IMG/VR virus record: IMGVR_UViG_3300030085_002431
Span: 124,001-188,000 of that record
Length of the DNA: 64,000 nt
Strand: one strand, 5' to 3'
Below, piece by piece: positions 5,717 to 45,085 of the stretch. Below the pieces are notes generated by a model. The model was given only the letters and a program-made list of their open reading frames with translations, ran no database searches and was not told the DNA's origin. Every line of letters starts with the position of its first letter. Within the stretch, counting starts at the first letter, position 1. The position numbers were made by a program, and so were the translations under genes.

Positions 5717-5751
5717 TTTGCCTAAGGAGAGTTCGATCCTCTCATCGAGCA
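5679..5751 (+). tRNA. tRNA-CAT (elongator Met or Ile2)
   Basis: GCTCGAT/ATCGAGC acceptor, GCAAA-CTCATAA-TTTGC, GAGAG-TTCGATC-CTCTC; lacks initiator GGG/CCC stem. Confidence 0.92.
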
Positions 5752-5955
5752 TAGTCTTGGGATGACTTAAAAAGCACCCTGGTCGGGATGGGTTCTTACG
5801 ACCCCTCGGGTTTCTTGCTTTTCCATAAGAGCAAGTGGTGGAGCTAAGTGCTATCGAATATACCCCGCAGGATAAGGGTTAAGCCTGCTGGTGCGGACAT
5901 CTGCAAAGGTTTCTTGTTTTTCCTTACGTCTAAAAAAACAAGTGGCGAGCCTGCA
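5752..5955 (+). ncRNA. Structured cyanophage RNA, manA-like (manA/wcaG group)
   Basis: ~200 nt right after a tRNA and before a sugar epimerase; two GGTTTCTTG...CAAGTGGYG hairpin units, CTGGTCGGG/CTGGTGCGG motifs. Confidence 0.7.
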
Positions 5956-5963
5956 TACTAACG

Positions 5964-34158: not shown

Positions 34159-34200
34159 AATCAACGACGAAGAAGTTTACATTTCTTAATCCGTTGGACC

Positions 34201-34290
34201 ACACCCCTTAAACCGAGACCTCTAGGGTGTCAAAATTACGTCTCTCATACCAACCCTGGAGGGTAGGGTTGGAATATTATATTCAGTGTT
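34201..34290 (+). ncRNA. PhotoRC-II-like psbA leader RNA
   Basis: GAGAC/GTCTC stem, CCCT/AGGG pseudoknot potential, CCAACCCT/AGGGTTGG hairpin, upstream of psbA. Confidence 0.75.
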
Positions 34291-42673: not shown

Positions 42674-42834
42674 AAGAGAAATTTGAAGATGTCCTGAAGA
42701 GAGAACTCAAAGCAGAGTTTAAAAAACAGATGGATGTCGATGTCAATGAAGCAGAACTAGATAAGGTTCTGAAACAGTACACCAAAGTAAAAAAGTCCAA
42801 TCTTCATGAAATCAGGAGACTGGACAAGTCTTAA
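42670..42834 (+). CDS. Hypothetical protein (54 aa)
   Basis: ATGA overlap. Confidence 0.55.
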   Translation: MKEKFEDVLKRELKAEFKKQMDVDVNEAELDKVLKQYTKVKKSNLHEIRRLDKS

Positions 42835-42847
42835 GTTAGATTAAAAT

Positions 42848-42861
42848 GTATCACATGTTAC
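42848..42861. promoter_or_regulatory. NtcA-type binding site
   Basis: (T)GTA-TCACATGT-TAC(A) = GTA-N8-TAC. Confidence 0.7.
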
Positions 42862-42869
42862 ACATGTGG

Positions 42870-42898
42870 TTGACTATATAAAAGACAGGGACTATAAT
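42870..42898 (+). promoter_or_regulatory. sigma70 promoter
   Basis: TTGACT-17-TATAAT. Confidence 0.85.
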
Positions 42899-42907
42899 GT
42901 CCTCATA

Positions 42908-43141
42908 CGTTCATCCTAATGCTCAGTCTAATACTGGCATTGACCTTAGCCCATCATGATGATGCTAATCCATATGGTTGGCATATGAGTTGTGAAAGGT
43001 TTTTAGAGAAACGAGTTGAAATCCTTATGGACGACAACTTGGACCGACGTGCAAAGTATAACCTTATAGGTTATTTTAAATCGAAGGTTCCAGGTGAATG
43101 CAATAGTATACTGACTTAGGACGCAAGTAAGTCGCGGAACG
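42908..43141 (+). ncRNA. Glutamine-riboswitch-like unit 1, ORF in P2 loop
   Basis: P1 CGTTC/GAACG; P2 TCCTAA/TTAGGA; CGCAAGTA junction. Confidence 0.7.
42919..43119 (+). CDS. 66-aa protein nested in riboswitch unit 1
   Basis: Hydrophobic N-terminus, Cys25/Cys61. Confidence 0.7.
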   Translation: MLSLILALTLAHHDDANPYGWHMSCERFLEKRVEILMDDNLDRRAKYNLIGYFKSKVPGECNSILT

Positions 43142-43144
43142 GAG

Positions 43145-43323
43145 CGTTCATCCCATGTTAGAATTACTACTCTACAGTAATATTCACTGCATTGATGCTG
43201 TTGAAATGATTCAACGCATTGAAGCAAATAAAAATGTGGATAAAGTTATTCGCACTGAGGTGATTGAGACCTTAAAGGAAGCAACACCTGAGTGTAATTG
43301 GGACGCAAACGACTGAAGGAACG
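43145..43323 (+). ncRNA. Glutamine-riboswitch-like unit 2, ORF in P2 loop
   Basis: P1 CGTTC/GAACG; P2 TCCCA/TGGGA; CGCAAA-CGACT-GAAG. Confidence 0.7.
43155..43316 (+). CDS. 53-aa protein nested in riboswitch unit 2
   Basis: MLELLLYSNIHC...TPECNWDAND; GGAG SD at 43141-43144. Confidence 0.7.
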   Translation: MLELLLYSNIHCIDAVEMIQRIEANKNVDKVIRTEVIETLKEATPECNWDAND

Positions 43324-43356
43324 GGGCTACAATCCCATTCTTTTAGGAGACCTACA

Positions 43357-43524
43357 ATGAACACCCTCAATCTCATTCGCAAGCAAATCGAAAAGCAGGC
43401 AGCACTGCATGACGCACAAATCTCTCATACCGCATATCGTGGTGTTGAGTATGACCAACGTTGTGTAGAGTCCAAAGAGACTCATGGAACTTTCTGCTAT
43501 CGTGGCAAAACTTACACCAAGTAA
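43357..43524 (+). CDS. DUF4278-like YRG peptide (55 aa)
   Basis: AGGAGA SD; AYRGVEY and CYRGKTY. Confidence 0.85.
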   Translation: MNTLNLIRKQIEKQAALHDAQISHTAYRGVEYDQRCVESKETHGTFCYRGKTYTK

Positions 43525-43528
43525 ACCC

Positions 43529-43624
43529 ATGCAACAATTAACAGTCGTTGGATTAATTTCCTTAGGTTGTATTGCATTTATCGGAATGATGTATGGTGAG
43601 ATTCTCCTCCTGAATAGGAGGTAG
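43529..43624 (+). CDS. 31-aa membrane peptide
   Basis: MQQLTVVGLISLGCIAFIGMMYGEILLLNRR. Confidence 0.55.
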   Translation: MQQLTVVGLISLGCIAFIGMMYGEILLLNRR

Positions 43625-43801
43625 ATGGAACACTACACTTATCATCATGATGATAAGGACAAAGATAGTAGACCACCAGCATGTTATCAACTCACATATA
43701 GAGGTGTTAACTACTGGTCCTGTTATCAAATCCACTTGGATGAATGGTTTGAAAAATTATATACAACTTCAGCATTTTCTGAAGATTTAAAGGGGAGGTA
43801 A
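43625..43801 (+). CDS. Second YRG-motif peptide (58 aa)
   Basis: AGGAGG SD; LTYRGVNY. Confidence 0.7.
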   Translation: MEHYTYHHDDKDKDSRPPACYQLTYRGVNYWSCYQIHLDEWFEKLYTTSAFSEDLKGR

Positions 43802-44177: not shown

Positions 44178-44199
44178 ATGATTGCTAATATAGATTGCA

Positions 44200-44237
44200 A
44201 AGGAGACCTTGACGGGTCTCCTTTTTTTATGTAGAAT
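44200..44237 (+). terminator. Terminator with embedded promoter (TTGACG-17-TAGAAT)
   Basis: AAGGAGACC-TTGACG-GGTCTCCTT followed by T run. Confidence 0.75.
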
Positions 44238-44262: not shown

Positions 44263-44439
44263 ATGGACAAGGAACGATTAAAACTAATTGTTAGAAATCT
44301 AGAATTGCTTGTCGATGGTCTGAAGTCGGAAGTCTATTCTGATGTTGACGCCTACAAGGCAGAGAACTATGATGACCCTCCTGAGTACTACCATGATTAT
44401 GATGAGGTCTTCTCCGACGATGATGGATACCCCGACTGA
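44263..44439 (+). CDS. Acidic hypothetical protein
   Basis: MDKERLKLIVRNLELLV. Confidence 0.7.
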   Translation: MDKERLKLIVRNLELLVDGLKSEVYSDVDAYKAENYDDPPEYYHDYDEVFSDDDGYPD

Positions 44440-44443
44440 ACGA

Positions 44444-45085
44444 ATGACCCAAACTGTAACTCTAGTCTCTGTTACTCCTGATGCAGAGAAGCACATGGCA
44501 TATTGTGCCCGTGTAAGCAATCCTAATAATCAGGAAAATGAGAAGTTCTCTGGACTCCTCAAGTATTGTGTGAAGCACCAGCATTGGAGCATCTTTGAGC
44601 AAGCATTCATGACTCTGGAAATCAACACTACCAGGGGTCTGGCAGCTCAAATACTGCGCCATCGCTCATTTACATATCAAGAATTTTCACAACGGTATGC
44701 TGATTCTTCCCTACTCTCGGAGACGATCCCTCTACCTGAACTACGCAGACAAGACACCAAGAATCGTCAGAATTCTATTGATGATGTTGACCCGTTTACG
44801 GTGCAGAAGTTTGAAATGCTGATGCAACAGCACTTTCAGGCAGGTATGGACCTCTATCAGAAGATGCTCAATGAGGGGATCGCAAAGGAGTGTGCCCGCT
44901 TTGTGCTTCCTTTAGCATGTCCCACAAGACTTTACATGACGGGATCTGTGCGCTCATGGATCCATTATATCGATTTGCGTTCTGCTAATGGAACACAGAA
45001 AGAACATATGGACATTGCCAATATGGCAAAGGGAATCTTTATTGAACAATTCCCTGCTGTTGCTGAGGCAATGGAGTGGGTCTAA
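44444..45085 (+). CDS. thyX: FAD-dependent thymidylate synthase
   Basis: RHRSFTYQEFSQRY, ECARFVLP. Confidence 0.96.
   Translation: MTQTVTLVSVTPDAEKHMAYCARVSNPNNQENEKFSGLLKYCVKHQHWSIFEQAFMTLEINTTRGLAAQILRHRSFTYQEFSQRYADSSLLSETIPLPELRRQDTKNRQNSIDDVDPFTVQKFEMLMQQHFQAGMDLYQKMLNEGIAKECARFVLPLACPTRLYMTGSVRSWIHYIDLRSANGTQKEHMDIANMAKGIFIEQFPAVAEAMEWV

Follow-up and report, generated by a model that had tools for sequence, protein, structure and literature searches.

The closest described relative of the element analyzed here is the type 1 glutamine riboswitch (glnA RNA, Rfam RF01739), exemplified by the Synechocystis gifB leader. It consists of a P1 helix (CGUUC/GAACG) followed by an unpaired A, a P2 hairpin, an ACG-N linker, an AAGUA/GAA E-loop flanking a P3 helix, and a long-range Watson-Crick pair between the linker base after ACG and the base after P1. 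It lies in the 5' UTR of DUF4278/IF17-type genes, a class known to be under glutamine riboswitches (PMC6212724), where control is probably translational, through the Shine-Dalgarno. Doublets of this riboswitch, annotated as glnA, occur in the cyanophages S-PM2 and S-CREM1, and 157 doublets were counted as independent units (PMC9481103), as they are also treated in the alignment of Weinberg 2010; this corresponds to the current view of glutamine doublets as pseudo-cooperative units. The type 2 glutamine riboswitch (Downstream-peptide, RF01704) has the same binding-pocket nucleotides, with an H-type pseudoknot in which GGAACG lies in the loop of a second hairpin, a C:G long-range pair, and a downstream YRG peptide. 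Protein genes in loops of structured RNA, with long-range helices closing around them, are found in group I and group II introns, where the ORFs encode mobility or maturase proteins for the intron itself. In leader RNAs such as Salmonella mgtA/mgtL and mgtCBR, and in classical attenuators, translation of an embedded ORF could decide which RNA structure forms, but these ORFs are short leader peptides with no function of their own.

In a 64,000-nt stretch of cyanophage DNA (the window; IMG/VR record IMGVR_UViG_3300030085_002431, positions 124,001 to 188,000), we examined a pair of glutamine-riboswitch-like units in which each P2 loop holds a complete small protein gene, with all features on the plus strand. 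The original prediction described two tandem aptamers, each enclosing a whole gene, and this observation proved correct to the base. Unit 1 (unit A) consists of CGTTC (42908-42912), A (42913), TCCTAA (42914-42919), TTAGGA (43116-43121), CGCAAGTAAGTCGC, and GGAACG (43136-43141). Unit 2 (unit B) begins three bases later with CGTTC (43145-43149), an A (43150), TCCCA (43151-43155), and TGGGA (43299-43303), followed by CGC-AAA-CGACT-GAA-GGAACG ending at 43323. The ATG of a 66-aa ORF (42919-43119) starts on the last base of the 5' P2 strand of unit A, and its TAG (43117-43119) lies inside the 3' P2 strand, whereas the ATG of a 53-aa ORF (43155-43316) starts on the last base of TCCCA, and its TGA (43314-43316) overlaps the GAA of the core. 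The arrangement is not due to chance, as the 3' core pattern GGACGCAA-N9-GGAACGG occurs twice in the window against 0.02 expected, and CGTTCATCC occurs exactly only at these two sites in the window.

The same four pieces in the same order are present in all ten cyanomyovirus isolates first retrieved, and in more than 100 IMG/VR contigs. As the original prediction anticipated for covariance models, Rfam searches of the window gave no hit at gathering thresholds, nor at E<=10 on positions 42800-43450, and Rfam searches of the ten isolate loci with gene-bearing units likewise gave no glutamine hit; this reflects the size of the inserts and is not evidence against the assignment. By contrast, related cyanomyoviruses (S-PM2, S-CREM1, and IMG/VR contigs) have the same pair with short P2 hairpins, forming natural loop deletions of the same locus with the units 3 nt apart and the same downstream gene, and five of these reach the gathering score of RF01739 (42.8, 40.3, 39.1, 37.6, and 36.4 bits against a cut-off of 35). 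By descent, the window element is the gene-bearing version of these short-loop doublets. In addition, the Rfam hits listed in PMC9964418 (Table S7) include a 235-nt glnA hit in S-ShM2, whose span covers unit A and the gene-bearing unit B. The element carries every conserved core nucleotide of the Rfam Glutamine consensus, apart from the covarying long-range pair. It shares the binding-pocket nucleotides, a C:G long-range pair, and a downstream YRG peptide with type 2, but it does not conform to the type 2 architecture, since no hairpin of the required kind surrounds either GGAACG, and homologues score only 24.6-29.7 bits with RF01704, below the cut-off of 33.

The interpretation offered in the original prediction was only partly supported, as the P1 partners had been assigned as two independent tandem aptamers, whereas covariation of the long-range pair and of P3 favors an interlocked arrangement. 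In this arrangement, the 5' half of unit A and the 3' half of unit B form an outer three-way-junction aptamer, and its P3 encloses an inner, circularly permuted aptamer formed by the 3' half of unit A and the 5' half of unit B. The outer P1 pairs 42908-42912 with 43319-43323 and spans 416 nt, and A42913 is the conserved unpaired A. The E-loop is split between the units, with AAGUA (43125-43129) only in unit A and GAA (43315-43317) only in unit B (Rfam consensus GGAAGUA...GAAGGAACG), so that the E-loop and P3 of type 1 are found only across the two units and not within either unit alone. P3 pairs AGUCG (43130-43134) with CGACU (43310-43314), and among homologues it appears as AGUCA/UGACU, AGUCU/AGACU, GGACGG/CCGCCC, and GGCUAACG/CGUUGAGCU; in an alignment of 29 homologues, columns 39:116 read AU 17, GC 6, GU 5, and columns 48:108 read GC 9, UA 6. 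The linker CGC of unit A (43122-43124) ends in C43124, which forms the outer long-range ("linchpin") pair with G43324, the base after the GGAACG of unit B (43318-43323); this pair is C:G here rather than the G:C of type 1, is kept in 29/29 homologues (columns 33:126; CG 17, GC 12), and is supported by 41 of 41 unique core signatures, whereas the tandem partner pairs in only 15/29. Within P3, 43137-43141 of unit A and CGUUC of unit B (43145-43149) form a local hairpin as the inner P1, with A43143 and G43144 forming the loop, and A43150 is its unpaired A. Together with P2B and the unit B linker, this hairpin rebuilds a putative second, circularly permuted glutamine pocket. The inner linchpin joins G43142 to C43306, the last base of the unit B linker CGC (43304-43306), and is paired in 26/29 homologues (columns 56:104) against 17/29 for the tandem reading. 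It changes from C:G to G:C in the L149 type of homologue, although it varies in only a few lineages and is A.C in two of them.

P2 closes around whole genes, as the original prediction proposed. P2A has 6 bp next to the core (42914-42919 with 43116-43121) and closes a loop of 197 nt, and P2B has 5 bp (43151-43155 with 43299-43303) and closes a loop of 143 nt, both very long for such short helices. Nevertheless, P2 covaries across inserts of 138-234 nt. On 30 distinct ORF-bearing P2A strand pairs, position 3 reads CG 18, UA 11, UG 1, and on 60 P2B strand pairs, positions 3-5 show several Watson-Crick types, with 0 of 1000 permutations reaching the observed pairing. A distal helix extends P2A through the coding sequence of the first gene (42937-42945 with 43093-43101, the latter strand including the codon of the invariant C-terminal Cys). 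Its pair 37:191, deep inside the first gene, also covaries and reads GC 9, CG 8, UG 2, and GG 1, the window being the G.G mismatch. The first and last 36 nt of the insert form a predicted duplex of -27.0 kcal/mol in the window, and the cognate median is -24.4 against -14.9 for non-cognate pairs. It should be kept in mind that the homologues are related, so the number of independent compensatory events is smaller than these counts suggest.

The nested ORFs are under purifying selection, with dN/dS of 0.20 and 0.26 for the first and second gene, respectively. The stop of the first gene lies inside the P2A 3' strand in 21 of 37 records. The second gene reads on through the P2B 3' strand, the linker, and the P3 3' strand, which gives the tail WDAND, and 69 of 81 records stop at this U-GA/U-AA. 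Positions G43141 to G43144 read GGAG, a possible Shine-Dalgarno for the second gene, and the GAG junction that creates it appears in 50 ORF-bearing and 0 short unit B sequences. Short or gene-bearing P2 occurs independently in either unit, with all four combinations found (29, 52, 8, and 29 records).

The element sits at the 5' end of an inferred transcript. A sigma-70-type promoter-like site (42870-42898; TTGACT-17-TATAAT, 11 of 12 consensus matches) places the inferred transcript start at about 42905, 3 nt before the aptamer, and a -10 box ends 7-8 nt before CGTTC in 63 of 119 distinct upstream sequences under a strict pattern. Downstream, the gene presumed to be regulated (43357-43524) encodes 55 aa with two YRG motifs and belongs to the Syn9 gp198 family (phrog_545), which is DUF4278/IF17-like; it matches PF14105 with 22.4 bits (E 1.6e-4), below the curated cut-off of 25.3. 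A YRG ORF follows 30-66 nt downstream in all 111 assessable loci. In the presumed expression platform (43325-43356), GGG (43325-43327) can pair with CCC (43334-43336), and the Shine-Dalgarno AGGAG (43345-43349) lies 7 nt before the ATG, although this pairing scheme is an inference, and an alignment of 69 such spacers did not resolve the platform of the subclass to which the window belongs. In the subclass where the linchpin nucleotide is C, the following CUCUUUA is complementary to the UAAGGAG Shine-Dalgarno, as in the scheme proposed for Synechocystis gifB (PMC6212724).

Overall, we consider it likely, with good but not complete confidence, that this is the cyanomyovirus form of the type 1 glutamine riboswitch, differing from the described form in that its P2 holds a 66-aa gene instead of a short loop, its P3 holds a second aptamer that itself carries a 53-aa gene, and it is phage-encoded. 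The analysis itself establishes the anatomy, its conservation, the covariation, the coding status of the nested genes, and the class of the downstream gene. What we infer from sequence alone is that two glutamines bind and stabilize the P1 helices and long-range pairs, which would change pairing of the 3' flank and so access to the AGGAG at 43345-43349, and that the folded aptamer would mask the nested start codons while ribosomes on the nested genes would unfold it. The mutual coupling of translation and ligand sensing suggested in the original prediction remains an inference. In contrast to the intron ORFs, the host RNA here is a putative metabolite sensor in an mRNA leader whose helices include start and stop codons, and in contrast to the leader peptides, the ORFs are conserved proteins, predicted to be structured and under purifying selection, that sit inside the aptamer itself. 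Published descriptions of the S-PM2 and S-CREM1 doublets, in which both P2 loops are short, and of the 157 counted doublets mention neither the interlocked pairing nor genes inside the loops. Literature searches for nested ORFs in riboswitches and for DUF4278 in phages found nothing relevant, although a prior description, for instance in Ames and Breaker 2011 or Ren et al. 2015, cannot be fully excluded.

Two independent tandem aptamers acting side by side appear unlikely. The identical and invariant P1 sequences make tandem pairing possible and cannot by themselves discriminate the partner assignment, Rfam 15 aligns single units in cis in several homologues, and in one homologue, L277, both readings give G:C pairs. 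However, the 37.6-bit Rfam alignment (positions 12-110 of homologue L068) is itself the nested one, with a 52-nt insert in P3, and the trans P3 pairs are kept with changes on both sides, whereas the cis mini-hairpins hold in only 7/29 and 6/16 and the window has no cis P3 hairpin at all. In addition, the 3-nt spacer leaves no room for a separate expression platform, and the loop-deleted window sequence folds into the nested form, with an MFE of -25.2 kcal/mol, the nested structure at -24.9, and the tandem structure 7 kcal/mol worse at -17.7. We rejected the tandem model on covariation and energy. A purely local reading, in which the 3' half of unit A and the 5' half of unit B form a free-standing permuted aptamer, was also considered, but it became the inner aptamer of the nested model in light of the P3 and linchpin data.

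It is possible, though we are doubtful, that the riboswitch works while the nested genes are passive passengers, with P2 loops tolerating any insert, small-gene cassettes having recombined in, the switch controlling only the downstream YRG gene, and translation of the inserts having no regulatory meaning. This would be consistent with the four loop combinations, with the occurrence of the same ORF family and the same short hairpin in either slot, and with the constant downstream gene. By contrast, the start codon sits at the same P2 position in nearly all records, the frame and stop of the second gene are mostly fixed in the E-loop, the GGAG-creating junction is found only when unit B holds a gene, and the coding ends are selected to pair; these features are expected if translation and folding interact, but none of them proves it. 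It is very unlikely that the gene-bearing aptamer is a relic whose pieces survive as intergenic signals (ribosome binding, translational coupling, RNase sites, recombination homology) and no longer sense glutamine. The missing Rfam hit and the long loops on short P2 helices could be taken in its favor, but every core nucleotide is kept in all gene-bearing loci, P2 and P3 covary specifically in gene-bearing members, coding sequence is constrained to close P2A, and the full 426-nt RNA is predicted to fold much better than shuffled sequences (z -4.9), with an MFE structure that contains P2A and P2B.

A more speculative possibility, which we regard as tentative at best, is that the interlocked double aptamer is a three-output translational switch. 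Glutamine would lock the fold, burying the start codons of the two nested genes and exposing the Shine-Dalgarno of the IF17-like gene, whereas at low glutamine ribosomes would enter the nested genes, unfold the aptamer, and terminate on the outer P1, such that the phage would express alternative small proteins according to host nitrogen status. The conserved aptamer halves might in addition serve as homology arms that let small-gene cassettes move between the two P2 slots and between phages.

Riboswitch aptamers are treated as compact non-coding modules, and tandem glutamine riboswitches as independent units, and neither view accommodates selected genes inside the sensor helices or two units that appear to share their halves in the manner of an intramolecular domain swap. 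Covariance-model scans systematically miss such members, and the doublet count in the literature probably mixes two architectures. The arrangement is common in marine cyanomyoviruses, which reprogram nitrogen metabolism in some of the most abundant photosynthetic organisms on Earth, and offers a tractable system for asking how translation and ligand sensing interact on one RNA.

The first nested protein belongs to the Syn9 gp196 family (phrog_6471, 3.5e-35) and the second to the Syn9 gp197 family (phrog_504, 7.6e-23), while Pfam searches found nothing for either. Both are predicted to form disulfide-type Cys-to-Cys helical hairpins, and both Cys are invariant. The AlphaFold2 model of the first (mean pLDDT 78, core above 90) has an N-terminal hydrophobic helix followed by a Cys25-Cys61 hairpin, and the model of the second has a pLDDT of 83 overall and 48 in the tail. 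Foldseek searches against the PDB gave no match better than E 4 for either model. A profile comparison of the two families aligned the Cys-to-Cys cores only weakly (E 9e-4, probability 23%), so that common descent is likely but not shown. In the first gene, RNA pairing even dictates amino-acid co-variation, with Leu/Phe at codon 8 against Gln/Glu at codon 59.

The window is a T4-like cyanophage, and the region has relatives in 420 Synechococcus and Prochlorococcus phage records. The observation behind the original prediction, namely two glutamine-riboswitch-like units that each enclose a whole gene, held in full, as every sequence element it listed was found at its position. In the first unit (unit A), CGTTC at 42908 is followed by A and TCCTAA, then by TTAGGA at 43116, CGC-AAGTA-AGTCGC and GGAACG at 43136-43141. 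The second unit (unit B) begins three bases later with CGTTC at 43145, A and TCCCA, followed by TGGGA at 43299, CGC-AAA-CGACT-GAA and a GGAACG ending at 43323. The 66-aa ORF (42919-43119) starts on the last base of the 5' P2 strand of unit A and ends with a TAG inside the 3' P2 strand, whereas the 53-aa ORF (43155-43316) starts on the last base of TCCCA and ends with a TGA that overlaps the GAA of the core. The 3' core pattern occurs twice against 0.02 expected, although Rfam reports no glutamine match here at any threshold used.

The three small genes of the locus belong to the Syn9 gp196, gp197 and gp198 families, and all ten isolates first fetched carry the same four pieces in the same order. 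Natural counterparts of the loop deletion that the original prediction had called for were found in three other phages: S-PM2 and S-CREM1 have the same two units with short P2 hairpins directly upstream of a YRG gene, and S-ShM2 has a short first unit and a gene-bearing second unit. Rfam 15 matches these short versions to Glutamine RF01739 at 33.5 and 33.3 bits, and to Glutamine-II at 29.7 bits, just under threshold, while in IMG/VR homologues five matches exceed the threshold of 35 (42.8, 40.3, 39.1, 37.6, and 36.4 bits). Rfam hits listed in a phage genome paper already include glnA hits in S-PM2 and S-CREM1, as well as a 235-nt hit in S-ShM2 that spans a gene, on which the paper does not comment (PMC9964418 Table S7).

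In an expanded survey, three pattern scans of IMG/VR gave 130 parsed doublets, of which the 118 with all four pieces were classified by the content of their P2 loops. Both units are short in 29 records, unit A is short and unit B holds a gene in 52, unit A holds a gene and unit B is short in 8, and both hold genes in 29. Syn9 itself was skipped by our parser, as it has four bases (GAGC) rather than three between GGAACG and CGTTC (junction at 766-779 of its locus). The same ORF family, and the same short hairpin, can occupy either slot. In addition, a gp196-like unit (CGUUCAUCCUAUG followed by an ORF) lies directly downstream of a manA RNA in P-SSM4 (NC_006884, about 165400-165595, in the flank of the Weinberg 2010 manA alignment), so that the cassette also occurs next to another structured RNA.

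In 111 of 111 loci where it could be assessed, a YRG-motif ORF starts 30-66 nt after the second GGAACG, behind an AGGAG-type Shine-Dalgarno. The copy in the window (43357-43524) matches DUF4278 at E 1.6e-4, below the Pfam cut-off, and DUF4278/IF17-like genes are the known targets of glutamine riboswitches (PMC6212724). A promoter-like site, TTGACT-17-TATAAT, ends 9 nt before the CGTTC of unit A, and a −10 box at that distance is common in homologues; the RNA is therefore inferred to start essentially at the aptamer. The −10 box TATAAT sits in the loop of a short inverted repeat just before the aptamer (42886-42905), as it does at the same position in many loci (for example GGTCTATAATAGACC in the doublet loci that we numbered L010, L013, L016, and L017), an arrangement that resembles the promoter-stem-loop cassettes described for T4-type phages.

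Several lines of evidence indicate that the two units are interlocked. Outside a few loci described below, unit A always has AAGUA but no GAA, unit B always has GAA but no AGUA, and the segment after AAGUA in unit A is complementary to the segment before GAA in unit B. Cognate pairs across lineages include AGUCG/CGACU, AGUCA/UGACU, AGUCU/AGACU, AGUCG/CGGCU, GGACGG/CCGCCC, and GGCUAACG/CGUUGAGCU, as well as AGCCGACG/CGCCGACU versus AGCCGACU/AGCCGACU, with a cognate duplex mean of −4.7 kcal/mol against −2.7 for non-cognate pairs. The base after ACG in linker A covaries with the base after the GGAACG of unit B, but not with the base after the GGAACG of unit A: across unique core signatures, 41 of 41 are Watson-Crick (C:G 29, G:C 12), while the tandem partners give 11 G.G and 11 C.C. 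The inner long-range pair (linker B with the base after the GGAACG of unit A) switches to G:C in the type represented by locus L149 and to G.U in the L195 type, and it is A.C in two types (L254 and L261). Five doublets (L195, L213, L274, L261, and L273) have AAGUA and GAA in both units, so that the fold is fully two-fold pseudo-symmetric with a shared P3.

The rival arrangement, two independent tandem aptamers, was compared with the nested one on an alignment of 29 short/short homologues. The outer (unit A) long-range pair, or linchpin, is kept in 29/29 under the nested model against 15/29 under the tandem model, and the inner (unit B) linchpin in 26/29 against 17/29. For P3, the nested model pairs columns 39:116 (AU 17, GC 6, GU 5) and 48:108 (GC 9, UA 6), whereas the cis mini-hairpins of the tandem model hold in 7/29 and 6/16; overall, 93% of cells are paired in the nested model, against at most 52% when the partners are slid. 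Infernal itself chose the nested alignment for homologue L068, with a 52-nt insert in P3. The window sequence with tetraloops in place of the genes has an MFE of −25.2 kcal/mol, and that fold is the nested one, with the nested structure evaluating to −24.9 and the tandem structure to −17.7. The structure therefore consists of an outer type-1 aptamer, made of P1 (42908-12/43319-23), P2A, the E-loop and P3 (43130-34/43310-14), and an inner aptamer that is enclosed by P3 and circularly permuted, with the local hairpin 43137-41/43145-49 as its P1. The interpretation in the original prediction, which read the units as tandem aptamers, was thus only partly supported.

P2 covaries around the inserts. 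In P2A, position 3 reads CG 18, UA 11, and UG 1, and in P2B, positions 3-5 each show several Watson-Crick types; no permutation out of 1000 reaches the observed pairing, although our parser required three pairs, so only positions 4 and beyond are free of selection bias. The first and last 36 nt of the P2A insert pair far better with each other than with those of other phages (medians of −24.4 and −14.9 kcal/mol, respectively; −27.0 in the window). RNAalifold finds a conserved distal helix inside the first gene, at 42937-45 with 43093-43101. One pair in this helix (window positions 42942 and 43096; columns 37 and 191 of the alignment, A7) reads GC 9, CG 8, UG 2, with the window as the single G.G exception, and corresponds to Leu/Phe at codon 8 against Gln/Glu at codon 59, protein-level co-variation that is here caused by RNA structure. 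The 426-nt RNA folds at z −4.9 relative to shuffles, with P2A and P2B both present in the MFE.

Both nested genes are coding. Their dN/dS values are 0.20 and 0.26, third positions are the most variable, length changes come in whole codons, and both Cys are invariant. AlphaFold2 gives confident predicted helix-loop-helix cores between the two Cys, preceded by a hydrophobic helix. The start codon sits at the fifth base of P2 in nearly all records, and the stop of the first gene lies in the P2A 3' strand in 21 of 37 records. The second gene reads through the core, which gives the tail WDAND or DAKAD, and stops at the U-GA or U-AA of the E-loop in 69 of 81 records; the tail is modelled as disordered, as expected if the RNA dictates it. 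The GAG junction that creates GGAG 10 nt before the second ATG occurs in 50 gene-bearing and 0 short second units, although shared ancestry may inflate this count.

The anatomy, its conservation, the covariation, the coding status and the gene context are shown by the present analysis, whereas glutamine binding and the regulatory mechanism are inferred. By analogy with the solved type-1 and type-2 structures (PMC6698751), both pockets appear complete, and glutamine would stabilise each P1 and its long-range pair. In the subclass whose outer linchpin base is C (for example loci L011, L019, and L025), that base begins the sequence CUCUUUA immediately after the aptamer, which is complementary to the Shine-Dalgarno UAAGGAG about 12 nt further on, as in the anti-SD scheme proposed for gifB, an ON switch. 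In the subclass of the window, the linchpin G and the following Gs can instead pair with a downstream CCC/UCC; either state might free the AGGAG at 43345-43349. The nested start codons are in P2, and a ribosome terminating at 43314-16 would cover the outer P1 3' strand; folding and translation of the nested genes should therefore exclude each other, and it is possible that this is used for regulation.

By descent and by core features, the element is a member of the type-1 glutamine riboswitch family, and it fails only the covariance-model score, because of the inserts. Glutamine doublets are already known, as a review from the Breaker lab counts 157 of them as independent pseudo-cooperative units (PMC9481103), and the original alignment aligns single units in cis and leaves gene-bearing second units in the unaligned flank. 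What differs here is the presence of genes inside the aptamer and the interlocked fold, of which we found no description, at least in the literature that could be searched.

Downstream of the YRG gene, a second small ORF with an LTYRG motif (43625-43801) gives a weak DUF4278 match (E 0.019), and a 46-aa hydrophobic ORF (43484-43624) lies between the two YRG genes. A strong terminator-like hairpin at 44199-44237 (11 pairs plus a T run) overlaps a promoter-like site, TTGACG-17-TAGAAT, and probably marks the end of the riboswitch transcript and the start of the next one. The 247-aa ORF at 44342-45085 contains the motif RHRSFTYQEFSQRY and sits where relatives annotate thymidylate synthase ThyX. 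Elsewhere in the window, Rfam finds a PhotoRC-II RNA (34189-34285, 77 bits), two adjacent wcaG RNAs (5751-5849 and 5859-5956, 50 and 43 bits) and a tRNA (1558-1628), which are the usual cyanomyovirus set.
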